The notes under the pieces: model-generated
Seen by the model: only the letters and a program-made list of their open reading frames with translations
What the model was told of the DNA's origin: nothing
The model's database searches: none
Assembly (NCBI RefSeq): GCF_039654945.1
Contig: NW_027361982.1
Location: 1,178,001 to 1,242,000, forward strand
Direction of reading: 5' to 3'
DNA from: Dendrobates tinctorius
Lineage: Eukaryota
Length of the DNA stretch: 64,000 bases
Shown here: positions 19,201-52,474 of the stretch, piece by piece
Numbering within the stretch: position 1 is the first letter of the stretch
Layout of the letters: each line of letters begins with the position of its first letter
Program-made: the position numbers and the translations under genes

Positions 19201-22200
19201 AGCCCCGGGTATAACATGGTGTAGACACCTGGGTATAACAGTGTAGACCCCTGGGTATAACATAGTGTAGACCGTCGGTATAACAGAGTGCAGACCCCGG
19301 TATAACGTAGTGTAGACCCCCGGGTATAACATAGTTTAGACCCCCAGGTATAACATAGTGCAGACCCCCGGTATAACATAGTGTAGACCCCCGGGTATAA
19401 GTGTAGACCCCCCGGTATAACAGTGTAGACCGCCGGGTATAACATAGTGTAGAGCCCCGGTATAACATAGTGTAGACCCACTAGTGTAGACCCCCGGGTA
19501 TAACATAGTGTAGACCCACTAGTGTAGACCCCCGGGAATAACATAGTGTAGACCCCCGGGTATAACATAGTGTAGACCCCCGGTATAAGAGAGTGCAGAC
19601 CCCCGGTATAAGAGAGTGCAGACCCCGGTATAACATAGCGTAGACCACCGGGTATAACATAGCGTAGACCCCCCGGGTATAACACAGTGTAGACCCCCCG
19701 GGTATAACACAGTGTAGACCCCCCGGGTATAACACAGTGTAGACCCCCCGGGTATAACACAGTGTAGACCCCCCGGGTATAACACAGTGTAGAATCGCGG
19801 TATAACATAGTGTAGACCCCCGGGTATAACACAGTGTAGACCCCCCCGGGTATAACACAGTGTAGACCCCCCCGGGTATAACACAGTGTAGACCCCCCCG
19901 GGTATAACACAGTGTAGACCCCCCCGGGTATAACACAGTGTAGACCCCCCCGGGTATAACACAGTGTAGACCCCCCCGGGTATAACACAGTGTAGACCCC
20001 CCCGGGTATAACACAGTGTAGACCCCCCCGGGTATAACACAGTGTAGACCCCCCCGGGTATAACACAGTGTAGACCCCCCCGGGTATAACACAGTGTAGA
20101 CCCCCCCGGGTATAACACAGTGTAGACCCCCCGGGTATAACACAGTGTAGACCCCCCCGGGTATAACATAGTGTAGACCCCCCCGGGTATAACACAGTGT
20201 AGACCCCCCCGGGTATAACACAGTGTAGACCCCCCCGGGTATAACATAGTGTAGACCCACTAATGTAGAGCCCCGGGTATAACATGGTGTAGACCCCTGG
20301 GTATAACAGTGTAGACCCCCGGGTATAACATAGTTTAGACCCCCAGGTATAACATAGTGGAGACCGTCGGTATAACAGAGTGCAGACCCCGGTATAACAT
20401 AGTGTAGACCCCCGGGTATAACATAGTTTAGACCCCCAGGTATAACATAGTGCAGACCCCCAGGTATAACATAGTGTAGACCCCCCGGTATAACATAGTG
20501 TAGACCCCCCGGTATAACATAGTGTAGACCCCCCGGTATAACATAGTGTAGACCCCCCGGTATAACAGTGTAGACCCCCCGGTATAACAGTGTAGACCCC
20601 CCGGTATAACAGTGTAGACCCCCCGGTATAACATAGTGTAGAGCCCCGGTATAACAGTGTAGAGCCCCGGTATAACATAGTGTAGACCCACTAGTGTAGA
20701 GCCCCGGGTATAACATAGTGTAGACCCACTAGTGTAGACCCCCGGGTATAACATAGTGTAGACCGTCGGTATAAGAGAGTGCAGACCCCGGTATAACATA
20801 TTATAGACACCCGGGTATAACATAGTTTAGACCCCCGGGTATAACATAGTTTAGACCCACTAGTGTAGACCCCCGGGTATAACATAGTATAGACCCCCGG
20901 GTATAACATAGTGTAGACCCCCGGGTATAACATAGTGTAGACCCCCGGGTATAACATAGTGTAGACCCCCGGGTATAACAGAGTGTAGACGCCCTGGTAT
21001 AACAGAGTGTAGACGCCCTGGTATAACAGAGTGTAGACGCCCTGGTATAACAGAGTGTAGACGCCCTGGTATAACAGAGTGTAGACGCCCTGGTATAACA
21101 GAGTGTAGACGCCCTGGTATAACAGAGTGTAGACGCCCTGGTATAACAGAGTGTAGACGCCCTGGTATAACAGAGTGTAGACCCCAGGGTAAAACAGAAT
21201 GCAGACCCCCCCCGGGTATAACATAGCGTAGACCCCCGGTTATAACATAGCGTAGACCCCCGGGTATAACAGCGTAGACCCCCGGGTATAACACAGCGTA
21301 GACCCCCGGGTATAACACAGCGTAGACCCCCGGGTATAACACAGCGTAGACCCCCGGGTATAACACAGCGTAGACCCCCGGGTATAACACAGCGTAGACC
21401 CCCGGGTATAACACAGCGTAGAGCCCCGGTATAACATAGTATAGACCCCTGGGTATAACAGAGTGCACACCCCCGGTATAACAGAGTGTAGACCCCCGGG
21501 TATAACATAGTGTAGACCCCTGGGTATAACAGTGTAGAGCCCCGGTATAACATAGTGTAGACCCCCGGTATAACAGAGTGCACACCCCCGGTATAACATA
21601 GTGTAGACCTGCGGTATAACAGAGTGTAGACCCCCGGGTATAACATAGTGTAGACCCCTGGGTATAACAGTGTAGAGCCCCGGTATAACATAGTGTAGAC
21701 CCCCGGTATAACAGAGTGCACACCCCCGGTATAACATAGTGTAGACCTGCGGTATAACATAGTGTAGACCCCCGGGTATAACAGAGTGTAGACCCCCGGT
21801 ATAACAGAGTGTAGACCCCCGGGTATAACATAGTGTAGACCCCCGGGTATAACATAGTGTAGACCCCCGGTATAACATAGTGTAGACCCCCGGTATAACA
21901 TAGTGTAGACCCCCGGGTATAACAGAGTGTAGACTCCCGGGTATAAGAGTGTAGACCCCCGGGTATAACATAGTGTAGACCCCCGGTATAACATAGTGTA
22001 GACCCCCGGGTATAACATAGTGTAGACCCCCGGTATAACATAGTGTAGACCCCCGGTATAACATAGTGTAGACCCCCGGGTATAACATAGTGTAGACCCG
22101 CGGGTATAACATAGTGTAGACCCCCCGGTATAACATAGTGTAGACCCCCGGTATAACATAGTGTAGACCCCCGGGTATAACATAGTGTAGACCCCCGGGT

Positions 22201-22777
22201 ATAACATAGTGTAGACCCGCGGGTATAACATAGTGTAGACCCCCGGGTATAACATAGTGTAGACCCCCGGTATAACATAGTGTAGACCCGCGGGTATAAC
22301 ATAGTGTAGACCCCCGGGTATAACATAGTGTAGACCCCCGGGTATAACATAGTGTAGACCCCCGGTATAACATAGTGTAGACCCCCGGGTATAACATAGT
22401 GTAGACCCCCGGGTATAACATAGTGTAGACCCCCGGGTATAACAGTGTAGACCCCCGGTATAACATAGTGTAGACCCCCGGGTATAACATAGTGTAGACC
22501 CCCGGTATAACATAGTGTAGACCCCCGGGTATAACATAGTGTAGACCCCCGGGTATAACAGTGACATAGTGTAGAGATCCCCTTCAGGTACATGAGATGA
22601 GCTCTGGTATGAGGTGACCGGTGTTCTCTATGTCGGGCTGAGCCATAACCCGCTGCTCCCTCAGCGCCATTATATAATACCGTCTGTCGCTGATGACAGG
22701 ACGGCGGCCGGAATTGCAGCCCCCGGCACCCACCTCCCCCGCGGAGCTCCGTCCCTCACGGCCGCCGACTCCGCCAT
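1139..22777 (-). CDS. MEIOSIN: MEIOSIN (BHMG1)-like HMG-box protein, whole gene span; spliced CDS join of 22734-22777 (or 14295-14308), 13873-13964, 13149-13232, 13007-13056, 12674-12874, 4528-4697, 4370-4459, 1139-1286; 292 aa (or 282 aa)
   Basis: All introns are GT-AG with compatible phases and give one open frame. Motifs [74 protein letters not shown]..RHPYC and PKP..LLAEKA match the C-terminal half of vertebrate MEIOSIN as I recall it. Syntenic with SNRPD2. Confidence 0.88.
1320..2700. repeat. Purine-rich ~40-45-bp minisatellite (gtcatgattattgatgaggagccaggattagtaaggaggagga) in the last MEIOSIN-like intron; resumes at 4088-4330
   Basis: Tandem units visible; the array is interrupted by the 2.7-4.1 kb interspersed element. 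Confidence 0.92.
2705..4088. mobile_element. Unclassified interspersed repeat (MITE-like) inserted in the minisatellite
   Basis: Non-tandem block that splits one array; internal repeated motifs tttttgataaccagc / gctggttatcaa. Confidence 0.5.
4370..4459 (-). CDS. MEIOSIN: MEIOSIN-like HMG-box exon (S)[29 protein letters not shown]
   Basis: 90-nt phase 2/2 exon; acceptor tctttttag, donor GTCAGA; HMG helices 2-3. Confidence 0.92.
4528..4697 (-). CDS. MEIOSIN: MEIOSIN-like exon with HMG-box start GHCSTP...[22 protein letters not shown]
   Basis: Acceptor cctttcag, donor [18 protein letters not shown].NR signature; lies inside ORF 4416..4742. Confidence 0.92.
4928..5513 (-). mobile_element. L2-type LINE 3' fragment
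   Basis: RT C-terminus YHPTRALRSADDLRL..RLQDFTRAAPILWNALP..FKPVLKTHLF; (TAA)n tail; near-identical copy at 40.8-41.6 kb. Confidence 0.85.
6664..10484 (+). mobile_element. Non-autonomous piggyBac-like DNA transposon with internal ~380-bp repeats and (CCCTAA)-like tract
   Basis: TTAA|(t)cccttt ... gaagggg|TTAA ends; second copy in the opposite orientation at 44.3-51.2 kb. Confidence 0.8.
6805..6850 (+). ncRNA. Minimal type I hammerhead ribozyme motif in a ~150-bp Penelope-like fragment (about 6796-6943)
   Basis: CTGATGA-A-GGCTA(attttatgta)TAGCC-GAAA-CGCGTT; the fragment is absent from the sister transposon copy. Confidence 0.65.
10514..11972 (-). mobile_element. CR1 LINE, 5'-truncated, RT domain split by a frameshift (ORFs 11533-11997 and 10685-11638)
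   Basis: RPVSLTSVVGK, YLDFSKAFDTVPH, SGVPQGSVLGPLLF, FADDTKL, RRLRGDLI, TRGHSLRL motifs. Confidence 0.95.
12674..12874 (-). CDS. MEIOSIN: MEIOSIN-like exon [17 protein letters not shown]...RARRLQ
   Basis: 201-nt phase 0/0 exon; acceptor gtgtttag, donor GTGAGG; SLDHxY motif. Confidence 0.85.
13007..13056 (-). CDS. MEIOSIN: MEIOSIN-like exon (V)LFEEVDIMSWPSEVVQ
   Basis: 50-nt phase 1/0 exon; acceptor ttcttttcag, donor GTAACG; FEEV motif. Confidence 0.82.
13149..13232 (-). CDS. MEIOSIN: MEIOSIN-like exon (S)[27 protein letters not shown]
   Basis: 84-nt phase 1/1 exon; acceptor attttgcag, donor GTAGGT; LxLSPxLxSSP motif. Confidence 0.82.
13873..13964 (-). CDS. MEIOSIN: MEIOSIN-like exon QMLVPYISSSSSDNGDGGPWLVSVSPGSPR
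   Basis: 92-nt phase 2/1 exon; acceptor ttcattccag, donor GTGAGT. Confidence 0.8.
14295..14390 (-). CDS. MEIOSIN: 96-nt exon of the MEIOSIN-like gene: in-frame stops followed by ATG at 14308 (MEVKG); 5'UTR/start exon or cassette exon
   Basis: Strong acceptor ctcttttcttgcag and donor GTAAGA; the ATG is in frame with the downstream exons. Confidence 0.65.
14430..14756. mobile_element. Partial palindromic MITE (cggatccg-rich)
   Basis: Repeated aaaacggatcc / ggcggatccg motifs; terminal tgtgaaacaggcc like the Harbinger-type MITE at 42.3 kb. Confidence 0.5.
15002..15266. mobile_element. Tc1/mariner-derived MITE
   Basis: TA|cagtgggtacggaaagtattcagacccc ... ggggtctgaatactttccatacccactg|TA. Confidence 0.88.
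15305..15842. mobile_element. Tc1-like MITE with internal 33-bp tandem repeats and a hairpin
   Basis: Imperfect TIR ctgtgcaaaggttttaggcag / ctgcacctaacacttttgcacag; (gcctccatcatcagtatctggtgaccacccgta)n, inverted after about 15640. Confidence 0.65.
16620..22575. repeat. ~6-kb minisatellite of 24-27-bp units (gtagacccccgggtataacatagt) in MEIOSIN-like intron 1
   Basis: Tandem units visible, with homogenised sub-blocks; source of the long STLCYTRG ORFs. Confidence 0.97.
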
Positions 22778-23423: not shown

Positions 23424-26400
23424 CAGGGCCGGACTGGGACTAAAATTCAGCCCTGGCATTTGAAGTTACACAGGCCCACTAGTCACATGGTGACTATATA
23501 ATATCTTTGTACACTTGTAGTTTACAAGAAGTGAGAGGAGATTAACACGACTATATAACATGTAGTCAGAGCTGTGCCCAGTATTTCAGCTCAGTCCTAT
23601 TTATTGCTTTTAGGTACAGTACTCCTCCCAAAGCTCTGTCCCCTTTTTTATGCACTTTGACAGAATTCCTGGCAGAACTGCTATCCATTGGGCAACCAGA
23701 CCCCCTGGTCATAGCTGCCCCTATCATACCTCCCAACTTTTGAAGAAGGGAAAGAGGGACAAAGACTGCGGTGCTCGCAGGCCACGCCCCGGCCACATCC
23801 ATTTCGCAACTGGTCACACCCGTGTCCACGCCCAACTGCACCTATTTAGCACTGGTGATCACACTGACTGGTACTGAGGGCACAGTGGCTGGCATTATGG
23901 GCACACTGGCACTAAGGAAGAGAGAAAACAGAGAAAGAAAGGAGAGCGAGAGAGAAAGAACAGAGAGAAAAGAAAGAACAGAGAAAGAGGGGAAAGAAAG
24001 AACAGAGTGTGAAAGAAAAAAGAAAGATTACAGAAAGAAAGAACAGAGAGAGAGAAAGAAAATGAGGGAAAGACAGAACAGAGAATGAGAAAGAACAGAG
24101 AAAGAAAGATTCTATAAAGATACTATAGCAGCCCGGCTCCCATTGTAGTGCCCACCTGAGCCTCCCGATGCAGGACATATCATGATCCGCTCACATGGCC
24201 GGCATCCCCGATTCCAAGGCGATCCTGCTGTCTGCGCTGTCAGAGGAGAACATGGTGATGGATCTGAAGCATTACTAGTTCCACCACAATCTCCTCATGA
24301 AATTATCTCATTTCTGGTCAGTTTCCAGCACATCACTTCCGGTGGAAAGTCATGTGTGAGTTTTAAAATGCTCCTCAGGGCTCCGCTGTGTACTCCTGTG
24401 TCCGTGGGAAAAGCCCGCTTTGTATGCCTCGTACACACTTGGCTCCACTCCGTACATCCCGTACACATATGGCTCCACTCTGTACACACACACGGCTCCG
24501 CTCCGTACACCACGTACACGCGCAACACCGCTCCGTACACCTCGTACACGCGCGGCTTCGCTCCATGCACCTCGTACACGCACGGCTCCGCTCCATACAC
24601 CTTGTACACGCGCGGCTCCGCTCCATACACCTCGTACACGCGCGGCTCCGCTCACCTCGTACACACACGGCTCTGCTCCGTACACCTCGCACACACACGG
24701 CTCTGCTCCGTACACCTCGTACACATCCGGCTCCACTCCGTACACCTCGGACACACGCTGCTCCGCTCACCTCGTACATACGCGGCTCCGCTCCGTACAC
24801 CTCGAACATACACGGCTCCGCTCCGTAAACCTCGTACACACACGGCTCCGCTCCGTACACCTCGTACACATCCGGCTCCGCTCCATACACCTCGTACACG
24901 CGTGGCTCCGCTCACCTCGTACACACGTGGCTCCGCTCCGTACACCTCGTACACACGCGGCTCCGCTCCGTACACCTCGTACACATCCGGCTCCGCTCCG
25001 TACACCTCGTACACACACGGCTCCGCTCCGTACACCTCATACACACACGGCTCCGCTCCGTACACCTCGTACACACGGCTCCTCTCCGTACACCTCGTAC
25101 ACACGCGGCTCCGCTCCGTACACCTTGTACACACGCGGCTCCGCTCCGTACACCTCGTACACATCCGGCTCCGCTCCGTACACCTCGTACACACACGGCT
25201 CCGCTCCGTACACCTCATACACACACGGCTCCGCTCCGTACACCTCGTACACACGGCTCCTCTCCGTACACCTCGTACACACGCGGCTCCGCTCCGTACA
25301 CCTCGTACACACGCGGCTCCGCTCCGTACACCTCGTACACATCCGGCTCCGCTCCGTACACCTCGTACACATCCGGCTCCGCTCCGTACACCTCGTACAT
25401 ACACGGCTCCGCTCCGTACACCTCGTACACACACGGCTCCGCTCCGTACACCTCGTACACATCCGGCTCCACTCCATACACCTCGTACACGCGCGGCTCC
25501 GCTCACCTCGTACACACGCGGCTCCGTACACACACGGCTCCGCTCCGCACACCTCGTACACACACGGCTCCATTCCGTACACCTCGTACACACACGGCTC
25601 CTCTCCGTACACCTCGTACACACGCGGCTCCGCTCCGTACACCTCGTACACACGCGGCTCCGCACCGTACACCTCGTACACATCCGGCTCCGCTCCGTAC
25701 ACCTCGTACACATCCGGCTCCGCTCCGTACACCTCGTACACACACGGCTCCTCTCCGTACACCTCGTACACACACGGCTCCTCTCCGTACACCTCGTACA
25801 CACGCGGCTCCTCTTCGTACACCTCGTACACACGCGGCTCCGCTCCGTACACCTCGTACACACGCGGCTCCGCTCCGTACACCTCGTACACACACGGCTC
25901 CGCTCCGTACACCTCGTACACACGCGGCTCCGCTCCGTACACCTCGTACACACACGGCTCCGCTCCGTACACCTCGTACACACACGGCTCCGCTCCGTAC
26001 ACCTCATACACAGACAGCTCTGCTACATCTACCCTGTAAACCCCTCCTGACCCCACACTTACTTCCCTCATCCAGCACCATGACAACCAGCACAGCAGAG
26101 TCCTGCAGACACCAAGAGGCAGGGCTGTGCGCACAGGACCTGTGATGAGGTCACAGGAGGGGCGGAGTCAGGGGTCACATGATCAGGGGTCTGGACAAAG
26201 GCTCCTGATCATGTGACCCCTGACTCCTCCCCTCCTGTGACCTCATCACAGGTCCTGTGTACAGAGAAGAGAGCAGGCAAGCGACGCCGTGAGTGGCGGG
26301 GGGGGGGGTCTTATGCTAGGGCGAGGATGGGGGGCGGGGCGTGGCGGCTTATCTCCTTGCAGTGCGGGATAGAAATTTAATCCCGGGAGGGTTGGCTGTG

Positions 26401-26536: not shown

Positions 26537-27312
26537 GGTGTAGGCTTGAGACCAGTGTTAGGTTTAGGTCTAGGCTTGGGACCATTGTTAGTATTAGGAT
26601 TAGAGCTAGGCTTGGGGCCAGTATTAGGTTTAGAGTTAGGCTTGGGACCAGGATTAGTGTTAGGTTTAGGCTTGGGACCAGTGTTAGGTTTAGAGCTAGG
26701 CTTAGGACCAGGATTAGTGTTAGGTGTAGGTTTGGGACTAGTGTTAGTATTAGGTTTGGTGCTAGGCTTGAGACCAGGATTACTGTTAGGTCTGGTTTTG
26801 GTACCAGGGTTAGTATTAGGTTTAGTGCTAGGCTTGGGATCAAGATTAGTGTTAGGTTTAAGCTTTGGACTAGTGTTAGTGTTAGGTTTATTGCTAGGCT
26901 TGGGACCAGGATTAATGTTAGGGCTAGGCTTGGGACCAGTGTTAGATTTAGGTTTAGGGCTAGGCTTGGGACCAGGATTAGTGTAAAGTCTAGGCTTGGG
27001 ACCAGGATTAGTGTTAGGTCTAGGCTTGGGACCAGTGTTAGTGTTAGGTTTAGTTAGGCTTGGGACCAGGATTAGTGTTGGGTCTAGTTTTGGTACCAGA
27101 GTTAGTATTAGGTTTAGTGCTAGGTTTGGGATAAAGATTAGTGTTAGGTCTAGTCTTGGGACCAGTGTTAGTGTTAGGTTTCCTGCTAGGCTTGGGACCA
27201 GGATTAGTGTTAGGTCTAGGCTTGGGACCAATTTTAGGTTTAGTGATAGGCTTGGGACCAGGATTAGTGTTAGGTCTAGTCTTGGGACCAGTGTTAGTGT
27301 TAGGTTTCGTGC

Positions 27313-27521
27313 TAGCAGACAAAAAGGCAGCAACACTTGTACCTGCCCAGATATAGGAACAAATGCAGACAACAGATCTAGGAATTAGTAGGTGGAGAGT
27401 GGCTGTTTATCTGGTATTTTGCACCTGTGTTGCTAACATCTTGCTTTATGGGCTGGCTGCACCCTGTAGTGCATTTGTTCCTAGATCTGGGCAGGTAAGT
27501 GTTGCTGCCTTATTGTCTGCT
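27313..27521. mobile_element. Small MITE with ~55-bp inverted termini
   Basis: agcagacaaaaaggcagcaacactt... pairs with ...aagtgttgctgccttattgtctgct. Confidence 0.7.
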
Positions 27522-28762
27522 GTTTAAAAAAGATTTTTTGGAGACCTTGAGTCTTCTTTAGTGGCTTTGCTATTTAGGTTTCGTGCTAGGCTTGGGACCA
27601 GGATTAGTGTTAGGTCTAGGCTTGGGACTAGTGTTTGGTTTAGTGCTAGGCTTGGGACCAGGATTAGTGTTAGGTGTAGGCTTGGAACCAGCGTTAGGTT
27701 TAGTGCTTGGCTCAGGACCAGGATTAGTGTTAGGTCTAGTATTGGGACCAGTGTTAGGTTTAGTGCTAGGCTTGCGACCAGGATTAGGGTTAGGTGTAGG
27801 CTTGGAACCAGTGTTAGGTTTAGTGCTTGGCTCGGGACCAGAATTAGTGTTAGGTCTAGTATTGGGACTAGTGTTAGGTTTAGTGCTAGGCTCGGGACCA
27901 AGATTAGTGTTAGATGTAGGCTTGGAACCAGTGTTAGGTTTAGTGCTCGGCTCGGGACCAGGATTAGTGTTAGGTCTAGCATTGTGACCAGTGTTAGGTT
28001 TAGTGCTCGACTCGGGACCAGGATTAGTGTTAGGTCTAGTATTGGGACCAGTGTTAGGTTTAGTGCTCGGCTCGGGACCAGGATTAGTGTTAGGTCTAGT
28101 ATTGGGACCAGTGTTAGGTTTAGTGCTCGGCTCGGGACCAGAATTAGTGTTAGGTCTAGTATTGGGACCAGTGTTAGGTTTAGTGCTAGGCTCGGGACCA
28201 GGATTAGTGTTAGGTCTAGTATTGGGACCAGTGTTAGGTTTAGTGCTAGGCTCGGGACCAGGATTAGTGTTAGGTCTAGTATTGGGACCAGTGTTTGGTT
28301 TAGTGCTGGGATCGGGACCAGGATTAGTGTTAGGTCTAGTATTGGGACCAGTGTTAGGTTTAGTGCTCGGCTCGGGACCAGGATTAGTGTTAGGTCTAGT
28401 ATTGGGACCAGTGTTAGGTTTAGTGCTCGTCTCTGGACCAGAATTAGTGTTAGGTCTAGTATTGGGACCAGTGTTAGGTTTAGTGCTAGGTTCGGGACCA
28501 AGATTAGTGTTAGGTGTAGGCTTGGAACCAGTGTTAGGTTTAGTGCTCGGATCGGGACCAGGATTAGTGTTAGGTCTAGTATTGGGACCAGTGTTAGGTT
28601 TAGTGCTAGGCTCGGGACCAGGATTAGTGTTAGGTATAGACATGGGACCAAGTTGGGGTTAGAGTAATAAAATGGATGCATTTAACAAATATGTAATTAA
28701 AAAAATAACAGTATATGTTTTTGATATTTTTCTTGTTTTTTTATCAGATTGTAGCAAAATAT

Positions 28763-30320: not shown

Positions 30321-31989
30321 TACATCACCCGACCATCTGACGTGTTATGTGCCATATGCGATTTTTCTGCTACTTGTGGGTGGATTATTAGATCCTCCAG
30401 ACATTCGCATTAGGTGCAGGATCCACTACTTGATCATGACAGAAAAGTATGGAGGTGAGGAGCATGCTGGGGCAATATGGACGCCGTCTGTCATGCCATC
30501 TGTTAGATTTTGGCCTGTGCAGTTCTGAGCTGATGGCATCGTCGCTCGCCTCAGATCCTCCATCGTCACCATCTGTTCTGATCGGGATTTTCCACACCAG
30601 CGCACAAACAAGCAGCATGGAAAGGTGGGCACGTGCCCAGGTGGGAGAGCGGCCAGCTCCTGGCGCTGTCCAGGCACACAACAATCATCTCTCAGGGTGA
30701 CATGGAAACTGGGGGCAGCCGATCACCAGGCTGACAATACACAGTGACGACAATGGCGGTCAGACAAATATTTATCTGACTGAGCAATGGGCGATATTTA
30801 CCCAGCGCTGCTCGTCTCACACAAAGACCTATTAGTTTATTCCAGCCAGCAGCCCCATATAACGTTCCCATCAGGGCCGGACATACCATTGCTGCAACTT
30901 GTGCCGCTGCACTGGGGCCCTGAGTCCAACTCCAAGGCCTCTTGCATCACAGACACATAGATAGGAGCATTATAAAGAGCTAGTGGACTGTATGGGGCCC
31001 ATATACTGCACGGGGCCCCGTACATGATGTATGAAATATTAACCCTGGAAATATCAGTTGTTTTCTCCTGTCCAACCCTATCCTACCTTTGTGGCAATCC
31101 AAAGGTGTAATGGCAGACTTGTGCACTGCACCCCATAAACACAATCCTCCCCCTATGGGCACTATTGTGGTGAGCGCGCTGATTCCATCCTGTCTCCCCC
31201 CCCCCCCCCCCCCCCGAGGTAATGTGGGATCCCAGTCCCTTTCCGCAGCTCATTGCCAGCCCTGCGGATAATCATCACGCCACCTCTTCTCTGCAGCTTG
31301 TTTGCTTTCCTCAGCTCACGCTTGACCAGATTAGAACAGATTACAGATGGCAGCAAGAGCGATAAGAGACAGCGAACACTGCGATATGGAGACCGCAAAT
31401 GTGAGCTCGGGGACCAACGCTGCCCTGAGTCGTATTGATTAATTTCTGAGGAAATTAGGGCAGAGCTGCGTGGTTGCAGTGTCACCCCAATAATACATGT
31501 GCGCAGGCGATGGTACAGGTTATACGTGCTGTGTGTTTTTACACTTGTGGATTCAAGGTGAACGCTGCACCGTGGACCCTAGGCGACATCTTCGCCATCA
31601 CACCAGTATAAATCGGGAGGTCCTCAACCCTCCAGATCGTCCAACTGAAATTGAAGCCAAATTTTTGATAAGTGACAGGACCTGATTAGAAATTACAGTT
31701 GCAGCCTCTTGGTCATCATTATCGAGGAGAACGTGGGCGTGTAAATCCATGTAATCTCCGCACATGTGTCCCAGCCGCTCCCTGATTGAGATCCTGGAGG
31801 CAGAGACATCAGGACACAGAAAGTGACAGCGCATCCCGGCAGTCACTCAATGTAGAATAGACCAGGACCTGCAAACAGCAGGTCCTGATTTACAATCGCA
31901 TCTCCCCAATCTCTAGAATAGACCTGATCTGTGAATGAAGTCCTGATTTACATTCTCGTCTCCCAATCTCTGAAACTTGACCTGAAACT

Positions 31990-32635
31990 GCAGAAAGTCT
32001 TGACAATCTCATCTTCCAAATTGGGAATAGACCTGGTTTTATAGACAGAAGGTCCTGACAATCTCATCTTCTAATCTCTGGAATATATCTGAATTTGCGG
32101 GTAGAGGGTCCTAACAATCTTGCCTTCTAATCTCTGGAATACATCTGGATCCGAGGATAGAGGGTCCTGACAATCTCATCTTCTATTCTCTGGAATACAT
32201 CTGGATCCGAGGATAGAGGGTCCTGACAATCTCATCTTCTATTCTCTGGAATATATCTGGATCCGAGGATAGAGGGTCCTGCCAATCTCATCTTCTAATC
32301 TCTGGAATACATCTGGTTCCCTAGATAGAGGCTCCTGACAATCTCATCTTCTAACCACTGGAATATATCTGGATCCGCGGATAGCGGGTCATGACAATCT
32401 CATCTTCTATTCTCTGGAATATATCTGGATCCGAGGATAGAGGCTTCTGACAATCTCATCTTCTAACCTCTGAAATATATCTGGAACCGTGGATAGAGGC
32501 TCCTGACAATCTTGTCTTCTAATCTCTGGAATATATCCGGATCCATGGACAGAAGGTCCTGATAATCTCATCTTCTAATCTCTGGAATATATCTGGATCC
32601 GCGGACAGAGGGTCCTGACAATCTTGTCTTCTCAG
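31990..32635. repeat. ~60-bp minisatellite directly upstream of the GPCR ORF
   Basis: (ggtcctgacaatctcatcttctaatctctggaatatatctggatccgaggatagag)n. Confidence 0.9.
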
Positions 32636-32676
32636 TCTTCCCAACAGACTGGATCTGTAAATTTCTCCAGACACCA

Positions 32677-33807
32677 ATGTTTCTCCCATCTCCAGGCATA
32701 GGGATTGTTCCAGTTGACAAGGTTGATCCTCTCTGGGATGAGCGGCTATCCTCCATGTTGCTGGCCATGAATTTATCGTCCGCTGTTCCCGGGACCCCTG
32801 TCTCAGCCCCTTTGGTTACTGTGTCCAATGTACCCTATTTGGTGACAGAAGTGTTGACAGCGATCATCTCTGTGGTGGGCAACACTCTTATATGCCTGGC
32901 GATTATAAATGACCGCAGGCTCCGCACCGTCACCAACAATTTCCTGCTGTCTCTAGCTGCTGCGGACATGCTGGTGGGAGCCGTGGCCATCCCTTGTGCC
33001 ATCATGCTGGACCTGGGCATAGCTCGCTGCAGTCTGTTCTCCTGCTTACTCATGCTCTGCAACCTCATGACATTTTCTTTGGCGTCCATCTTTGGACTTT
33101 TAGCAATAGCGGTAGAACGCTACATCTCCATCTTATGCCCCTTCCATTACCGTTCTCTCGTCACGCCACGAGCTTCCATAATAGTGATAATCTGTACTTG
33201 GATACTGGCGGCACTCACCGGTTTGATGCCGCTCATGGGTTGGCGTAAACCATTCCCTCCCGAAAGCGAGTGCCTTTTCAGTAGCCTCATCTCGGAGTCT
33301 TACATGGTCTACTTGATATTTTTTGGCTGTGTGATCCCACCGCTGATCACCATGCTTGTGCTCTATGCCCGAATCTTCCTGGAAATTCGAAGGCAGATCC
33401 GACAGATTGCAGAATGGGCAGTGGACGTGAGTCGTCGGAGGAGGAGACGACGCATCGTGGTCAGGGAGTTCCGTATGGCCACCTCGCTGTTCATCGTCGT
33501 CTTCTGCTTCGTTGTCTGCTGGTTCCCCATTCATATCCTCAACGTTGTGCGACTCTTCTGTCCTCAGTGTTTGGTGCCCACAGACCTGGTGCTCACCGCT
33601 GTGATTCTCTCTCACGCCAACTCTGCTATAAACCCCATCATTTATGTTTTTCGAATGAGAACTTTCCGACGAGCGATAGAAGCCACGCTGTCCTGTTCTT
33701 GTGGCACAAGTGCTGTGGGAAGTGTCACTGCGTCCAGCCTGGCAAAAGCTGCCCATGGACAGAGGGGCGAAGGTCAAATCAGGGATGTTCCTCTGCCTGG
33801 CACCTAA
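32677..33807 (+). CDS. Adenosine receptor-like class A GPCR, single coding exon (376 aa; the start may instead be ATG 32767, MNLSS)
   Basis: Seven hydrophobic segments; motifs YLVTE..VVGN, NNFLLSLAAAD.LVG..AIP, SIFGLLAIAVERY, CLF, YMVY..FFGCV.PPL..M..LY.RIF, CWFP.H.LN and LSHANSAINPIIY are characteristic of ADORA receptors. Confidence 0.92.
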   Translation: MFLPSPGIGIVPVDKVDPLWDERLSSMLLAMNLSSAVPGTPVSAPLVTVSNVPYLVTEVLTAIISVVGNTLICLAIINDRRLRTVTNNFLLSLAAADMLVGAVAIPCAIMLDLGIARCSLFSCLLMLCNLMTFSLASIFGLLAIAVERYISILCPFHYRSLVTPRASIIVIICTWILAALTGLMPLMGWRKPFPPESECLFSSLISESYMVYLIFFGCVIPPLITMLVLYARIFLEIRRQIRQIAEWAVDVSRRRRRRRIVVREFRMATSLFIVVFCFVVCWFPIHILNVVRLFCPQCLVPTDLVLTAVILSHANSAINPIIYVFRMRTFRRAIEATLSCSCGTSAVGSVTASSLAKAAHGQRGEGQIRDVPLPGT

Positions 33808-34233
33808 ATTTATTGGAAGAAATCCAAGGTTTCCCACAGGGAATAAAATTGTCTGGGTCCGTTTATCCTAACACTGGATCTGAGACTGCTATATTTCCTG
33901 ACGTTCCCTCGTGTGACCTGGTGTAATCTTCTGTTTCTGAGCACCAAGAGGACCGTGCTATTCACACACGCAAGTCTGCATTGTTGAGCTGAGTTTGGTG
34001 CTTCCCTGCAGCAGCCATGTCAGTCTGCACTGCAGTCCTGTCATTCTATTCATGAAGCTACAAATGAACAGAACTGAAATAGTCCACCAGATAAGGGACA
34101 GCACAACTACATGAGGCTCCAGTGCTGTCATTTTTTACAAAATCCTCAGTAATATAGCAACTTGACCATCTGTGGTGGGTTCTGGAGTACGGTGGGATTA
34201 ATGGGGGAGCTTTTGAGACCAACGGTGATTTAA

Positions 34234-34607
34234 TTAGTGATGAGCGTGCATGCTCGTGTGTTATCCTAGTATCTCGGGCATGCTCGAATAATATGTTCGA
34301 GTGTCCACTGCTGTCTATTATTAGTATAATTTTACTCATTTATATAGCGCCATTAATTCCACAGCGCTTTACAGACATTATCATCACTGTCCCCGATGGG
34401 ACTCACAAACTAAATTCCCTATTAGTATGTCTTTGAAATGTGGGAGGAAACCGGAAAACCCAGAGGAAACTCATGCAAAGATGGCGAGAACATACAAGCT
34501 CCTTGCAAATGTCCTTGGTGGGATCTGAACCCAGGAAAAAGCAAACATATTACTTCAGCACGCCTGAGATACTCGGATAACACCCCAGGACGCTCGCTCA
34601 TCACTAG
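34234..34607. mobile_element. MITE (tagtgatgagcg...cgctcatcacta) containing a SINE insertion
   Basis: Terminal inverted repeats visible. Confidence 0.6.
34317..34535 (-). mobile_element. V-SINE-like tRNA-derived SINE with L2-type tail
   Basis: gtgggaggaaaccggaaaacccagaggaaac core, B-box-like ggttcagatcc on the minus strand, and a tatatagcgcc tail shared with the L2 copies. Confidence 0.7.
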
Positions 34608-35517
34608 TAATAATGTGACTGCAGTGAAATAAATGTGGTATCAAAGGTGTTTTATGTCTATTAAAGATCATTATTACCAGTAAGTTACATGGTATGTCAG
34701 CAAGCAGGAAGGGGCGCATTACACCTGGGAGATCGGTGGGTGCCAGGGTGCAGATCGCTCTGAAGCACTGCTCAGCTGGCAGGTGAGGCTCCTGCACCGA
34801 GCGCTCCATGGTTCATAGATATTTCTAGACAATCTGGGGCTCAGTACAAAAATGGCAATAACAAATCTGTAGTTTTATTACTTTTATGCAAAACTCTGAA
34901 AAAAATAATTTGTATTTGTGTCGCCATATTGTAAGAGCCAGAGGATTTACATTTTTCTATCAGCGCTGTAACAGGTTATTTTGTGTGACAAGTTGTAGTT
35001 TTCATTGCATTTTTATGATACAACATATCAATCACTCAGTATAACTTTATACATTTGGTATAGTATTTGTATCAACCCACAGAATAGTGTTTTATTTGCA
35101 AGCTTTACTATTGCACTAAAAGAAATCACTAATTTATTAGTGGGGTGGTCAGTATTTGGAGTCCATCTTTTTTCTTTCCAGTGTGAGACTTGATTTTTTT
35201 GTGTAATGAGCAGTAGAGTTTAATGGTAGCATTTTATGATATGTACAACTGATCAGTTTTTAGCTCATTTTTGTGATGAACAAACATTGCAGTTCACCAT
35301 AGTTTTTCAGTGACTTACCACTAGGTATAAATATTGAAAAATTTGTATAGTTTGGGTCGATACAGATGTGGCGATACTAAAATTTTTTTTTTTTTTTTTT
35401 TTTTTGGGGGGGGGGATGTTTGTGGGGCTAGGGATGGCGCCGATGGGATGGATAGAGCCCAGTGCAGTGATTGACTATCCCAGACAACCCCATATAAAGC
35501 AAATAGGATTGTGGTAA

Positions 35518-35879
35518 AGGCCCCTTTACATTTAGCGATGCACCAGCGATCCTGACAACGATACGACCCTGTCAGGATCGCTGGTGCATCGCTAAATGGT
35601 CGCTAGTGAGCTGCCAAACAGGCAAATCTCACAGCGACATAGCAGCGATCTAGCGGACGATACTTACGTCCTCCCACCCGCCTCCACGCGTCGCTCGTCG
35701 GCGCCAGCAGGAAGCGCCCGACGAGAAATGGAGCTGCGCGATCAGCGATGGACAGCGGGGGAGCCGGTCGGAGGTAAGTATCACACATAGCGATATCGCT
35801 AGAGATATCGCTGCTGCGTCACCAAATCGGTGATGCTTTAGCGATATTGTTAGCGATATCGCTATGTGTAAAACCCCCT
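35518..35879. mobile_element. Harbinger-like MITE (TAA flanks)
   Basis: TIR aggcccctttacatttagcgat / atcgctatgtgtaaaaccccct. Confidence 0.75.
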
Positions 35880-35894
35880 TAACACTGACCAGTA

Positions 35895-37160
35895 AAGTGA
35901 TGGCTGCAAACAGAATCTTATCATGTATCTCTGTATACAGGAAGCTCCTCCTAGTAGTGACTGCAGACAGGATCTTATGTATTTCTGTATACAGGGAGCT
36001 CCCCCTAGTGGTGGCTGCAGACAGGATCTTGTCATGTACCTTTGTATACAGGGACCTACCCCTAGTGGTGACTGCAGACAGGATGTTATCATATATCTCT
36101 GTACACAGGGAGCACAGCACCCCCTAGTGGTGACTGCAGACAGGATCTTATCATGTATCTCTGTATACAGGAAGCTCCCCCTAGTGGTGTCTGCAGACAG
36201 GATCTTATGTATTTCTGTATACAGGGAGCTCCCCCTAGTGGTGGCTGCAGACAGGATCTTGTCATGTACCTTTGTATACAGGGACCTACCCCAAGTGGTG
36301 ACTGCAGACAGAATCTTATCATATATCTCTGTACACAGGGAGCACAGCACCCCCTAGTGGTGACTGCAGACAGGATCTTATCATGTATCTCTGTATACAG
36401 GAAGCTCCCCCTAGTGGTGTCTGCAGACAGGATCTTATGTATTTCTGTATACAGGGAGCTCCCCCTAGTGGTGGCTGCAGACAGGATCTTGTCATGTACC
36501 TTTGTATACAAGGACCTACCCCTAGTGGTGACTGCAGACAGGATGTTATCATGTATCTCTGTATACAGGGAGCTACCCCTAGTGGTGACTGCAGACAGGA
36601 TGTTATCATGTATCTCTGTATACACGGAGCACCCCCTAGTGTTGACTGCAGACAGGATCTTATCATATATCTCTGTATAGAGGGAGCTCCCCTAGTGGTG
36701 TCTGCAGACAGGATCTTATCATATATCTCTGTATACAGGGAGCTCCCCCTAGTGGTGGCTGCAGATGAGATCTTATCATATATCTCTGTATACAGGGAAC
36801 TGAGCTCCCCCTATTGGTGGCTCCAGACAGGATCTTGTCATGTACCTCTGTATACAGGGAGCTCCCCCTAGTGGTGACTGCAGACAGAATCTTATCATGT
36901 ATCTCTGTATACAGGGACCTCCCCCTAGTGGTGGCTGCAGACAGGATCTTATGTATACATGAAGCTCCCCCTAGTGATGGCTGAAGACAGAATCTTATCA
37001 TGTATCTGTGTACACAGGGAGCACCCCCTAGTGGTGACTGCAGACAGAATCTTATGTATCTCTGTATACAGGGAGCTCCCCCCCTAGTGGTGGCTGCAGA
37101 CAGGATCTTATCATATATCTTTGTATACAGGGAGCTCCCCCTAGTGATGGCTGCAGACAT
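35895..37160. repeat. ~57-bp minisatellite (~22 units, 230-bp higher-order unit) carrying CTCF-like CCACTAGGGGGAGC on the minus strand
   Basis: gggagctccccctagtggtgactgcagacaggatcttatcatgtatctctgtataca repeated. Confidence 0.92.
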
Positions 37161-37506: not shown

Positions 37507-37909
37507 TTAGTCTCGATATTACATTCCATTTGTGACTGTTTTTTTTAGCCCTTATAAATCTAAGAATTATTAGCTATGAACAGAATACATTCTTATAAAC
37601 ATACTGACACAAACAGGTTTGGTCTATCGCTGTGACTATTAGCATTTTTTTCTTAACCACTAATGACATTCTTCCCTGTAGACAGACCCACTCTCCAGAA
37701 ACACAGCGAGTTAAAATTTCATATCTGCAGATTCTGTTTATTACAAAAACAAATAAAAATCAAGAGAAATACAGGCTCCCAAAATGTCTGAAACAAAAAA
37801 AAATGTAAAAGACCCTAATAATGTGAGAGTCCTCAGCGTTTCCAGCTTTTGGGCATGGGCTAACATAGACAAAGTGAGAGGGGTTGGGGCAATGCTGGTG
37901 GTGACGCCA

Positions 37910-38084
37910 TCATTTTCCAGCTAGCAGCGGGTTCCTGAGCACAACTATGACGCTGTCTCCTCTCAGAAACATCTTGGAGATGTATCTGTCCTTGTTGACT
38001 GGCTTGGATTTCTTCTTTCCCTTGCCACTCTTGGGGACCTCGGTCCACATTTCCTTAACATTTTCTAGGACCATGTTACAGTGC
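37910..38084 (-). CDS. SNRPD2: SNRPD2 exon 3 (coding part)
   Basis: [15 protein letters not shown]...NPLLAGK*; AATAAA at 37737-37742 (-). Confidence 0.97.
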
Positions 38085-39428
38085 CTGCATGGGAAAATGA
38101 AGGACAGCGTAAGAAGCTGATACTGTGGGGTGATCACTACCCATTGGAGCCTGGCGGCACTCACCTGTCAAATGCTTTCACCCTCCCCAGCAGCTTCTTG
38201 TTGTTTCTGCAGTTGATAAGCACCTGGGTGTTGTTCTTCACAGACTGTGTGAGCACCGACAGGGGCCCCGTGTTAAACTCCTCCTCCTCCCGCTTCTGCA
38301 GCTCTTCTGGGGTCATCTCACTCTTCGGCTTGTTTAGGAGACTCCTGAAGGTAACAGAAAGTGAAGGAAGGTAAAATACATGTGGAATACATAGAACGAC
38401 CAGAAGTGGATATTACAGAATATATTGGGTACTAGGCATGATATATCACACCTTGTACATTACCTGGAGGTAATCAACTAATCGTATCCCCCTCATACAC
38501 GGCATCCTCAAGATTATATGGGGGTCTCATACACAATATACATCCTGGAAATTATACAGGGGTCTGACACACGATATATGACACCCCTACATTATATGGA
38601 TGTCTCATACACGATATATGAGGTCCTCTATATTATACCGGGGGGTGTTCAAACACAATATGTGACATCCTCTACATTATACGGGGTCTCATACACAATA
38701 TATAACACCTATACATTATACGGGGTCTCATACACAATATGTGACATCCTCTACATTATACGGGGTTTCATACACAATATATAACACCTATACGGGGTCT
38801 CATACACGATATATGACACCTATACATTATACGGGTCTCATACACAATATGTGACATTCTCTACATTATACGGGGTCTCATACACAATATGTGACATTCT
38901 CTACATTATACAGGGTCTCATACACGATATATGACACCTATACATTATACGGGGTCTCATACACAATATGTGACATCCTCTACATTATACGGGGTTTCAT
39001 ACACAATATATAACACCTATACGGGGTCTCATACACGATATATGACACCTATACATTATACGGGTCTCATACACAATGTGACATTCTCTACATTATACGG
39101 GGTCTCATACACAATATGTGACATTCTCTACATTATACAGGGTCTTACACGATATATGACACCTATACATTATACGGGGTCTCATACACAATATGTGACA
39201 TTCTCTACATTATACAGCATCTCACACACGACACCTATACATTACATGGGGGGTCTCATACACGATACATGACACCTATACATTATACGGAGGCCCCATG
39301 CATGATATGACATCCTCAACATTACTGAAATCCTCTAGACTATACGGGGTCTCACACACAATATATGACACCTCTACGTTATACGGGGTCTCATACAGCG
39401 CTATATCAACTGCACGGGTCACTCACAT
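37910..39428 (-). CDS. SNRPD2: Small nuclear ribonucleoprotein Sm D2, 118 aa; join 39427-39428, 38165-38344, 37910-38084
   Basis: [118 protein letters not shown]; GT-AG introns; 357 nt. Confidence 0.98.
38165..38344 (-). CDS. SNRPD2: SNRPD2 exon 2
   Basis: 180 nt; acceptor cttcag, donor GTGAGT. Confidence 0.97.
38520..39395. repeat. ~38-bp minisatellite in SNRPD2 intron 1
   Basis: (ctacattatacggggtctcatacacaatatgtgacatc)n. Confidence 0.9.
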
Positions 39429-39429
39429 C

Positions 39430-39650
39430 TTTCTCTCTTCACGTTGTTCCGGCGAATCTCGCTATCCGGCAGAATGACTTCCGCTTCCGGGAGTCGCGGG
39501 GTCAGAGGAGACACTTCCGCTCACTGTTGTCATAGTGACGGTTCACTATAGGATTATACACACTAAAGAATGGCGCTTCCCGCCAACGCTGAGACAGACG
39601 CAAAAACTAATGCGTCTGCTACCCGGAGACACCGGAGGAAAAGCGGGACA
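39430..39650 (-). promoter_or_regulatory. SNRPD2 5'UTR and promoter with ETS/GABP-type CGGAAG motifs
   Basis: acttccgcttccggg at about 39477-39491 and acttccgc at about 39513; CpG-rich; immediately upstream of the AT|gtgagt exon end. Confidence 0.65.
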
Positions 39651-40776
39651 TACATGGAAATATAGGGGCCACATACAGGAGAAGTGCAGATATGGGGGCA
39701 GTATAGATGTATATAGCGGAGATGTGCAGATATCAGGGCAGTATCGTTGTATATAGAGGATATGTGCAGATATGGTGGCAGTATAGATGTATGTATAGGA
39801 GATGTGCAGATACCGGGCAGTGTAGATGTATATAGAGGAGGTTGCAGAAATCAGAGCAGTATCGTATATAGAGGAGATGTGCAGATATCGGGGGAGTGTA
39901 GATATATATAGAGGAGATGTTCAGATATCGAGGCAGTGTAGATATATATAGAGGAGATGTGCAGATATCGGGGCAGTGTAGATATATATAGAGGAGATGT
40001 GCAGATATCGGGGGAGTGTAGATATATATAGAGGAGATGTTCAGATATCGAGGCAGTGTAGATATATATAGAGGAGATGTGCAGATATCGGGGCAGTGTA
40101 GATATATATACTGTAGAGGAGATGTTCAGATATCGAGGCAGTGTAGATGTGTATATATATATAGAGGAGATGTGCAGATATCGGGGCAGTGTAGATATAT
40201 ATAGAGGAGATGTTCAGATATCGAGGCAGTGTAGATGTGTATATATAGAGGAGATGTGCAGATATGGTGGCAGTATAGATGTATGTATAGGAGATGTGCA
40301 GATACCGGGCAGTGTAGATGTATATAGAGGAGGTTGCAGAAATCAGAGCAGTATCGTATATAGAGGAGATGTGCAGATATCGGGGCAGTGTAGATATATA
40401 TAGAGGAGATGTTCAGATATCGAGGCAGTGTAGATATATATAGAGGAGATGTGCAGATATCGGGGCAGTGTAGATATATATACTGTAGAGGAGATGTTCA
40501 GATATCGAGGCAGTGTAGATGTGTATATATATATAGAGGAGATGTGCAGATATCGGGGCAGTGTAGATATATATAGAGGAGATGTTCAGATATCGAGGCA
40601 GTGTAGATGTGTATATATAGAGGAGATGTGCAGATATTGTCGCAGTATAGATGTATATAGAGGAGATGTATAGCTATCAGGGCAATCTAGATGTATATAT
40701 TGGAGGATGTACAGATTTCAGGGTCAGTATAGATGTATATAGAGGAGTTTTGCAGCTATGGGGACAGTAGGTGTAT

Positions 40777-41624
40777 ATAATAATAATAAATGTTATTTCT
40801 ATAGCGCCGACATATTCCGCAGCACTTTACATTTCGGAGGGGATTTGTACAGACAATAGACATTACAGCATAACAATAATCACATAGATTATAACAGATA
40901 CCAAGAGGAATGAGGGCCCTGCTCACAAGCTTACAGTCTAAGAGAAAAAGGGGAGACACGAAAGGTGGGTGGTAATAGTTGCCCTGATTGTATGGACCAG
41001 CCATAATGTTAAGTGTGTAACAGTATAGACACAGAGGGCTAATGGATGCATAAAGCATGTGGGAACATGATGCGGGGAACCTGGTTATGGTAAAACTTTT
41101 GGCTGTGCCACATAGGGATAGATTAGGTTAATGTGTTGAGGCGATAGGCCAGTCTGAATAAATGCGTTTTCAGGGCACGCTTAAAATTGTGGGGATTGGG
41201 GACTAATCGTATTGACCTGGGAAGTGCATTCCAAAGAATTGGCGCAGCACGTGTCTAGTCTTGAAGACGGGAGTGGGAGGTTCTGATTATTGAGGATGCT
41301 AACCTCAGGTCATCAGAACGGAGGGCGCAGGTAGGGTGGTACACTGAAACAAGGGAGGAGATGTAGGGTGGTGCTGAGCCATGGAGGGCTTTGTGGGTGA
41401 GGGTAATAAGTTTATACTGAATTCTGGAGTGGATGGGTAGCCAGTGTAATGACTGGCACAAGGTAGAGGCATCGGTGTAACGATTGGTGAGGAATATGAT
41501 CCTGGCTGCAGCATTCAGGATGGATTGGATGGGGGAAAGTTTGGTAAGAGGGAGACCGATTAGAAGGGAGTTACAATAGTCGAGACGAGAATGAATAAGA
41601 GAAACAGTCAGAGTTTTTGCAGAG
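40777..41624 (-). mobile_element. L2-type LINE 3' fragment
   Basis: CQSLHWLPIHSRIQYKLITLTHKALHGSAPPY motif; same family as 4928-5513. Confidence 0.9.
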
Positions 41625-42080
41625 GAAATGTGCAGATATCGTGGCAGTATAGGTGTATATGGAGGAGGACTGCAGATATTGGGGCAGTGTAGATGTATAT
41701 AGAGGAGATTTGCAGATATTGGGGCTGTATAGATGCATATATTGGAGGATGTACAGATTTCGTGGAGCAGTATAGATGTATATAGAGGAAGATGTACAGA
41801 TTTCGGGGAGCAGTATAGATGTATATAGAGGAAGATGTACAGATTTCAGGGAGCAGTATAGATGTATATAGAGAAAGATGTACAGATTTCGGGGAGCAGT
41901 ATAGATGTATATAGAGGAAGATGTACAGATTTCGGGGAGCAGTATAGATGTATATAGAGGAAGATGTACAGATTTCGGGGAGCAGTATAGATGTATATAG
42001 AGGAAGATGTACAGATTTCGGGGAGCAGTATAGATGTATATAGAGGAAGATGTACAGATTTCAGGGGCAGTATAGATCTA

Positions 42081-51525: not shown

Positions 51526-52357
51526 TTAGGCCTGGAAGCGGGGCCAAGTCTTTACAGTGTTGTAGAAGGTGTTTCCGGGGCACTCGGTGGCGGTGACGTT
51601 GCGATGTCCCTTCAGGATGTAGGCGGACTTGATATATCCCTTGGTGACGCCGCAGCTGATCAGGTTCTTGGCAGCGTTCTGTGCGGCGGTTGTGGGGTTA
51701 CTACCTGGAATAACACAGTAGAGATTATAATGGTGTCAGTGGGGTTAGATCCATGAGGCCCCCAAGGATCTCCTGGACTTACTGGTGAAGGTTCCGACCA
51801 AGCTGATACCAATGGAGTTAGAGTTGTAGTTTGGAGCGTGAGCACCAACAGATGTCCAGCCACGGCCTTCAAATATGGAGCCATCTCCTCCAACCAGGAA
51901 ACTGCAAAGCCAAAGGCCCAGTAAGAACCAGCGAGATGCGTCTGAATTTATGGGTGTTACGGGGCCACTTACCTGTATCCGATGTCGCACCAGCCATTGG
52001 TGTTGATGTGCATGTTCTGGATGTTCTTGGCCTGAGTGATGCAGGCGGATTGGCTGGAGCAGGCAGCGCCAGCGGTATGGTGGATAATTACATAGGTGAC
52101 TGGAGTGGACATTGCTGTCCTGCAGGTTGGAGCCTTTCCTCCCCACTGGGATTTAGTGAGGATGGTGGGACAACCTGTAGGGTGAAGACAGAAGCTTCGA
52201 ATGCTGCAGTATTCACCCTCCATCCTACAGACCTCGACACACAAGAGCCCCTCATTGCCCTCGCTTCCATCTACAAACATTGGTAAGTTTTCATAGGGTT
52301 TTTGTACTTACATTGTGCAAGAGCACACAAGGCAAGGAAAGAAAAGAAACGCAGCAT
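51526..52357 (-). CDS. PGLYRP1: Short secreted peptidoglycan recognition protein (PGLYRP1/PGRP-S-like), 181 aa; join 52312-52357, 51973-52174, 51783-51901, 51526-51704
   Basis: Signal peptide MLRFFSFLALCALAQC; PGRP motifs CPTILTKSQWG, YVIIHHTAG, GWCDIGYSFLVGGDG.IFEGRGW..VGAH, SIGIS..GTF, LKGHRNV.ATECPG...W; GT-AG phases consistent; AATAAA at 51381-51386 (-). Confidence 0.93.
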
Positions 52358-52474
52358 GATTCACGGGTTCCTGGGTGAGAGAGAAAAGGCAACAAATACA
52401 ATTAGTGTGATATTCTGATTAAGAGGAGCCTGCAGGATAGAGACACAAGTTTAAGGTACCTGTATATATACATC

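Follow-up and report, generated by a model that had tools for sequence, protein, structure and literature searches.

An intact adorb2-clade receptor gene in the frog Dendrobates tinctorius

Main finding

The window analysed here, a stretch of 64,000 nucleotides from Dendrobates tinctorius (contig NW_027361982.1, positions 1,178,001 to 1,242,000), holds a receptor gene that belongs to the adorb2 clade, has an intact coding exon, sits in a conserved gene order and is under strong purifying selection. Our preferred reading, to which we give a probability of about 0.85, is that this gene is the hyloid-frog orthologue of adorb2 (the non-olfactory 'A0'), which, as an ancient vertebrate paralogue of the olfactory A2c/adorb1, is together with the latter sister to ADORA1/2A/2B/3, and that its product would work as a purine-nucleoside-activated G protein-coupled receptor (GPCR).

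A preliminary description of this DNA, made from its letters only, had proposed an additional adenosine-receptor subtype or retrogene, lost in mammals and possibly altered in ligand preference. The gene is a real find and its lineage is already known: the clade was named adorb2 in 2021 and A0, the member known from shark, has been cloned and its pharmacology described, so that the suggested novelty falls away and we are dealing with a subtype that is already named and in part characterised. Since the lineage already has its names (adorb2/A0), the main value of the present work lies in correct naming, public annotation having obscured it under labels such as 'adenosine receptor A1-like' or 'A2b-like'. 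What emerges is that frogs retain, under strong constraint, a fifth lineage of adenosine receptors that mammals do not have and which in tetrapods is essentially unstudied, as the name 'adorb2' occurs in a single publication of the searched literature. The remodelling of the deep pocket in amphibians is a modest new lead.

The coding exon and its product

An open reading frame (ORF) of 376 codons plus stop runs without interruption through the ERY region, exactly as had been claimed. The features of the exon are as follows.

32677..33807, + strand: maximal ORF, 376 aa (ORF listing; Pfam 7tm_1 over residues 68-323, E 1.8e-52)
32767..33807, + strand: probable true coding sequence, Met31 to Thr376, 346 aa (orthologue lengths and starts, Kozak context, upstream alignment, AF2 model)
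32770-32778, + strand: N-glycosylation sequon NLS
32830-32910, + strand: predicted TM1 (AF2 model)
32929-33015, + strand: predicted TM2 (AF2 model)
33034-33135, + strand: predicted TM3 (AF2 model)
33166-33237, + strand: predicted TM4 (AF2 model)
33295-33414, + strand: predicted TM5 (AF2 model)
33427-33558, + strand: predicted TM6 (AF2 model)
33580-33654, + strand: predicted TM7 (AF2 model)
33658-33705, + strand: predicted helix 8 (AF2 model)

The conserved start of the receptor is probably Met31 (at 32767), because the orthologues are 344-346 aa long and share an M-N-x-S N-terminus that matches this residue. Met31 also has the best Kozak context of the candidates (G at -3, A at +4), Met1 and Met27 having weak contexts and, in the upstream alignment, no conservation among other frogs.

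The product is a class A (rhodopsin-like) GPCR, closest to adenosine receptors both in sequence and in predicted fold. All the anchors of the class are present (N1.50, D2.50, R3.50, W4.50, P5.50, P6.50 and NPxxY), and the best match among solved structures is human A2A (1.8e-63), followed by A2B and A1 (about 1e-58) and A3 (about 1e-51), with aminergic receptors trailing at 1e-39. The AF2 model draws on an alignment of 52 relatives, reaches a mean pLDDT of 82.5 and has seven helices and helix 8, and its best 50 PDB matches are all A1, A2A or A2B (TM-score up to 0.95).

Membership of the adorb2 clade

The published phylogeny of Kowatschew & Korsching 2021 places adorb, which includes zebrafish A2c, as sister to all adora and traces it back to early deuterostomes; its genes are mostly monoexonic, whereas one intron is common to all vertebrate adora, and a split in early vertebrates gave rise to two paralogues, adorb1 and adorb2, the latter being known from cartilaginous fish and coelacanth as well as from five amphibians and seven reptiles, with no member in birds or mammals (PMC8462279). 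The shark receptor A0 was cloned from rectal gland (Bhanot et al., preprint, bioRxiv 10.1101/2020.11.01.363762), and the same work, which also reports its tissue distribution, describes a minimal second extracellular loop (ECL2) and places amphibian and reptile sequences on the A0 branch, lost in mammals.

Our maximum-likelihood tree contains 70 proteins (IQ-TREE, LG+C20+F+G4; support as ultrafast bootstrap/SH-aLRT; frog adorb1 not among the rows). It separates adorb from adora at 100/98, with the ORF outside adora, and places it inside adorb2 (100/99, stem 0.76) together with Squalus A0 and other elasmobranchs, coelacanth, caecilian, frogs, turtles and squamates, in the order of the species tree. 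Within that clade the ORF groups with hyloid frogs at 99/93, and a quick tree gives the same picture. The proposed lineage outside ADORA1/2A/2B/3 is thus borne out, and the phylogeny with vertebrate ADORA that had been put forward as a check finds no nesting inside the canonical clade, from which the ORF differs also in having ERY instead of DRY and no intron after TM3.

Word searches yield frog orthologues 72-89% identical to the ORF (Leptodactylus 89%, Hyla sarda 86%, Xenopus tropicalis 73%), reptile proteins at 55-57% and shark proteins at about 50-57%, including the UniProt entry 'A0 adenosine receptor' of Squalus, to which the ORF is about 50% identical. The taxon range of adorb2/A0 (sharks, coelacanth, amphibians and reptiles, with none in birds or mammals) fits, and the absence from mammals that had been asserted agrees with both papers, which report the gene as lost in birds as well as mammals (PMC8462279; bioRxiv 10.1101/2020.11.01.363762), and with the adorb-clade matches, among which, several being unnamed, there was no protein with a bird or mammal name.

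The ORF shares with adorb2/shark A0 a single coding exon, ERY, a short ECL2, a C-terminal LPGx, the adenine contacts and the ribose contacts Ser7.42 and His7.43. Two of these are short motifs with precise positions.

33115..33123, + strand: ERY motif (3.49-3.51), adorb signature (family alignment)
33793..33804, + strand: C-terminal L-P-G-x end motif (adorb2 alignments)

ERY, which had been taken for a peculiarity of this gene, turns out to be a clade-wide trait of adorb: position 3.49 is E in 35/35 adorb2 and 21/22 adorb1, and D (DRY) in all 14 of the 14 adora. The short ECL2 is equally clade-wide, with gaps of 5 and 8 residues relative to A2A (13 shorter), and the residue that follows this loop's Phe, which is E169 in A2A, is variable in every clade. 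L-P-G-x closes adorb2 proteins from sharks to frogs, the exceptions being Nanorana (an NCBI 'partial' entry) and Varanus, and is absent from adorb1. Its use as an adorb2 criterion is our own observation and not a published one; the shark A0 paper (bioRxiv 10.1101/2020.11.01.363762) was found to contain no mention of the C-terminus. The motif is preceded by R/K-N/D, varies in its last residue, unlike a classical PDZ ligand, and falls in a segment predicted to be disordered.

A side observation concerns a GC-rich, fast-evolving adorb2 protein with an LPGK end (P0062; L006 3001-4053, a Logan contig of SRR18112698), which joins the turtles as their sister, at the end of a long branch (0.74). If it were crocodilian or bird, it would bear on the reported archosaur loss of adorb2.

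Binding pocket and proposed function

Residue numbers of human A2A are used here. Alignments with A2A and with the family confirm the residues that had been listed as kept (TM1 Glu, i.e. Glu1.39, the ECL2 Phe, Met5.38, His6.52, Asn6.55, Ser7.42 and His7.43) and those listed as changed (DRY to ERY, T88/Q89 to S/L, E169 to S and N181 to I), and Trp6.48 and NPxxY are retained as well. In A2A terms, E13, F168, M177, W246, H250, N253, S277, H278 and NPxxY are common to the ORF and human ADORA2A/2B/1, to which it is 37-41% identical in structural alignments (30-31% to BRIL-fusion chains); it differs from them in ERY, in an ECL2 shorter by 13 residues, in lacking the adora intron and at 3.36, 3.37, 5.42 and 6.51. 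The adenine clamp is not among the changes: ECL2 Phe is F201 and Asn6.55 is N289 in ORF numbering. The ribose and deep-pocket contacts give a mixed picture, His6.52, Ser7.42 and His7.43 being retained, whereas the ORF has S for T3.36, L for Q3.37 and I for N5.42.

On this basis the frog adorb2 protein would work as a class A GPCR activated by a purine nucleoside, which would be held by the retained ECL2 Phe/Asn6.55 clamp and by ribose contacts with Ser7.42/His7.43. Its activation would raise cAMP through Gs, by analogy with shark A0: adenosine analogues open CFTR co-expressed with that receptor in oocytes, with a potency order unlike that of every mammalian subtype (bioRxiv 10.1101/2020.11.01.363762). 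Signalling of the frog receptor via Gs/cAMP is probable, the analogy being to one shark orthologue, about 50% identical and described in a preprint.

What sets the amphibian proteins apart from other adorb2 is, in amphibians at large, Q3.37L and N5.42I, and in frogs T3.36S, L3.33M, an Arg7 tract and a long stem. The corresponding features in the window are the following.

33076..33081, + strand: Ser3.36-Leu3.37, deep-pocket substitutions (family alignments)
33316..33318, + strand: Ile5.42 replacing a conserved Asn (family alignments)
33433..33453, + strand: Arg7 tract in ICL3 (codons read; family alignment)

Outside amphibian adorb2, T3.36 and Q3.37 are carried by almost every adorb2, adorb1 and adora protein, and N5.42 is found in the aligned shark, coelacanth, lizard and turtle adorb2 (19-20 of 22-23 non-frog adorb2) and in most adorb1/adora. 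Among 12 frogs, S3.36 and L3.37 are each found in 10 and I5.42 in 11; the salamander Pleurodeles has T3.36, M3.37 and I5.42, and the caecilian Geotrypetes T3.36, L3.37 and I5.42. L or M at 3.37 is thus seen in frogs, salamander and caecilian, and S at 3.36 in frogs only. His6.52, retained in the ORF, is replaced by Q in Pleurodeles and by N in Geotrypetes. Each of the three amphibian orders has thus replaced both Q3.37 (by L or M) and N5.42 (by I), an observation that may go beyond the published papers.

These substitutions could have consequences for the ligand. The deep (ribose-5') sub-pocket is more hydrophobic in amphibians, so that their receptors may not share the potency order of shark A0, nor perhaps its preferred ligand. 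Taken further, this leads to the strongest alternative to our reading, namely that amphibian adorb2 is a working receptor whose natural ligand has changed to a modified adenosine or another purine, the ribose-5' sub-pocket having been re-tuned by the hydrophobic residues at 3.37 and 5.42, together with T3.36S in frogs or the replacement of His6.52 in salamander and caecilian. At three or four positions the deep pocket is unlike that of any adenosine receptor characterised so far, which counts against our preferred reading. The substituted sites hardly vary in adora, in adorb1 or in adorb2 from outside the amphibians. Frogs have fixed 12 changes at sites conserved in other adorb2, and 4/12 lie in the orthosteric pocket (3.33, 3.36, 3.37 and 5.42), an enrichment that was counted post hoc, after the data had been seen, which weighs against it. 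The frog stem is very long (0.87 substitutions per site in the maximum-likelihood tree, against 0.18-0.33 for reptile stems) and is followed by strong constraint; the caecilian protein has 57-60% identity to those of reptiles and 47-51% to those of frogs. Against a shift stand the unchanged adenine clamp and Ser-His ribose contacts, the conservative nature of T to S, and A2A mutagenesis, in which mutating 3.37 or 5.42 tunes the binding of agonists and does not abolish it. We consider such a change of natural ligand unlikely. Of the altered ligand preference that had been suggested, the altered pocket stands as plausible from residue alignments and the preference itself stays conjectural. It is likewise doubtful, to about the same degree, that a burst of change in lissamphibian adorb2 rebuilt the ribose-5' sub-pocket, in which case the receptor may prefer a 5'-modified or more hydrophobic purine nucleoside; if true, amphibians would have a purinergic signal that other vertebrates lack.

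The Arg7 tract had been reported correctly. Its seven Arg are encoded by five different codons, and it is therefore not a slippage repeat; differences between related sequencing runs within it (33435 and 33436) are both synonymous. It represents a frog expansion of a basic cluster that is found in all adorb2 (E-E-K-R-R-K in sharks, R-R-R-R in turtles).

Distinction from the olfactory paralogue

The paralogue adorb1 ranges from jawless to bony fish and amphibians and is olfactory in bony vertebrates, Xenopus adorb1 marking sparse olfactory neurons (PMC8462279), and zebrafish A2c/adorb1a is an olfactory adenosine receptor according to Wakisaka et al. 2017, as cited in PMC8462279. As a sister adorb paralogue, A2c/adorb1a resembles the ORF in ERY, short ECL2, mostly monoexonic genes and canonical adenosine contacts.

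It might be asked whether the gene is the frog orthologue of A2c/adorb1, acting as an odorant receptor. Amphibians do possess adorb1, sparse olfactory neurons of Xenopus are labelled by it, and a few proteins of the adorb2 clade are named 'A2c' by NCBI (e.g. in Mobula). The tree, however, contradicts this idea and makes it highly improbable: adorb1 (lamprey, basking shark, coelacanth, ray-finned fish) forms one separate clade at 97/83, at a distance from the 100/99 clade that holds the ORF. Identity to adorb1 proteins is only 45-52% (46-52% for teleost 'A2c' receptors). Adorb1 is highly conserved (67% between bichir and lamprey), and the ORF carries the adorb2-type C-terminal LPGx that adorb1 lacks. 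Olfactory expression has been shown for adorb1 and not for adorb2, and the published olfactory expression in frogs concerns the former. No frog adorb1 protein was among the matches listed in two further word searches, one list being filled by teleosts.

Gene neighbourhood and constraint

The adorb2 orthologue lies in a window that is colinear with the loci of Leptodactylus, Dendropsophus and Rhinophrynus, the gene order in frogs being HMG-box gene, receptor, LSM/SNRPD2 and Amidase_2. The HMG-box gene is upstream of the receptor on the opposite strand, with conserved exons aligning at 14775-14900 and 16186-16305, and is a candidate MEIOSIN-like gene, i.e. the MEIOSIN of the preliminary description. 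Two neighbours follow downstream.

37908-38087, 38158-38382 and 39394-39539, - strand: SNRPD2 (Sm D2), 118-aa LSM-domain protein (exons read)
51527-52402: Amidase_2 gene, colinear with the Dendropsophus Amidase_2 (peptidoglycan-recognition-like) gene

SNRPD2 is convergent with the receptor gene and 4.1 kb downstream of it. The lizard Sceloporus likewise has the HMG-box gene next to the receptor on its upstream side. The synteny that had been proposed for checking holds in these species: several frogs have the receptor between SNRPD2 and the MEIOSIN-like HMG-box gene, the latter adjoining it in the lizard too, and this conserved position means that the locus is old, which argues against a retrocopy. 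Pairwise dN/dS values are low (0.077-0.115, at dS 0.6-2.0) in comparisons with Leptodactylus, Dendropsophus and Rhinophrynus, and the receptor genes of Leptodactylus, Rhinophrynus and Sceloporus are called as single coding exons.

That a canonical ADORA gene might have given rise to it as a retrocopy confined to this lineage, or as a copy now in decay, a reading prompted by a coding region without the intron common to all vertebrate adora, is already contradicted, and has next to no probability, given orthologues in the same neighbourhood in four frog families and a lizard, a clade that dates to sharks and beyond, a dN/dS of about 0.1 with the frame intact in relatives, and a 5' splice acceptor region conserved among frogs. 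The word 'retrogene' has to be abandoned, because the absence of a coding intron is ancestral to adorb, which is monoexonic back to early deuterostomes (PMC8462279), and from sharks to frogs the genes branch in the order of the species. A processed retrogene in the strict sense (recent, with an intron-bearing parent and no synteny) was tried and rejected in view of the conserved neighbours in frogs and lizard and of the ancient clade.

The 5' region, 3' end and transcription

The adorb2 gene was described as intronless, which holds for its coding region and probably not for the whole transcript, as judged from a putative, frog-conserved 3' splice site at 32670 and a small 5' exon in hylid models. 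Two features lie in this region.

32650..32670, + strand: putative 3' splice site, pyrimidine tract plus AG (frog alignment)
32047..32632, no strand: 56-bp minisatellite, 10.5 copies (TRF), ending 45 nt before the ORF and part of the gene's 5' region

The tract ending at 32670 aligns with the acceptor of the annotated Dendropsophus model, in which a 7-codon first exon is spliced to the main coding exon, and acceptor-like sequence is conserved at the matching site in Leptodactylus and Rhinophrynus. The receptor transcript thus probably carries a 5' exon, as far as the aligned sequences indicate. In hylids, the NCBI models (P0001, P0003; L005 10001-10021, then 10466 onward) begin in this 7-codon exon (M-V-G-F-L-I-Q), which joins about 60 nt before the conserved Met; the extra N-terminus so predicted is not conserved and is probably 5' UTR. 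A search upstream of the ORF found no counterpart of the 7-codon exon, and contigs of run X1 pass straight through the candidate acceptor at 32650-32670. Downstream of the ORF, AATAAA signals are found at 33842 and 34628.

The 56-bp minisatellite is locus-specific and not a dispersed repeat, since its depth in the DNA-like run X9 resembles that of unique sequence. The Leptodactylus orthologue has an upstream 56-bp minisatellite of the same family (L001 7655-8367), and Dendropsophus has one unit upstream.

In four public runs of close relatives, with sequences about 98-99% identical, contigs span the whole ORF with substitutions only; the only indels, at 32604 and 32606, are upstream of it, and the receptor contigs are colinear with the genome. 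Runs X1-X3 are very small (115-241 million letters) and yet their contigs cover about 32000-34300 to depths of about 5-21, X1 reaching 20.6 over the receptor gene. The unique flank 34740-35330 has no contigs in X1 and X2 and almost none in X3, and the unique flank 31391-31981 is empty in X1 only, of these three runs. The receptor-covering contigs stop at 34183-34294, before the first high-copy repeat. This pattern, in runs whose library type is not recorded, fits RNA better than shotgun DNA and suggests that the gene is transcribed.

Repeats elsewhere in the window

Minisatellite arrays occupy 17439-22563 (24 bp x212), 24427-26012 (30 bp x54) and 26537-28650 (30/60 bp x70), and the long ORFs that these arrays produce in several frames on both strands are repeat artefacts; the first of these arrays lies inside the interval that had been assigned to MEIOSIN. 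A 7-kb G-rich satellite of 39-bp units (about 178 copies) at 53905-60931 accounts for the GC skew of 0.75 at 54-60 kb, and further arrays belong with it at 52467-53306, 38503-39290, 39673-40779 and 41621-42077, related ones of about 40 bp occurring in or near SNRPD2. Very high-copy dispersed repeats are found at 34329-34540 and 35330-36700, where summed contig depth in run X9 reaches 10^5-10^6, and a 57-bp tandem array lies at 35896-37159.
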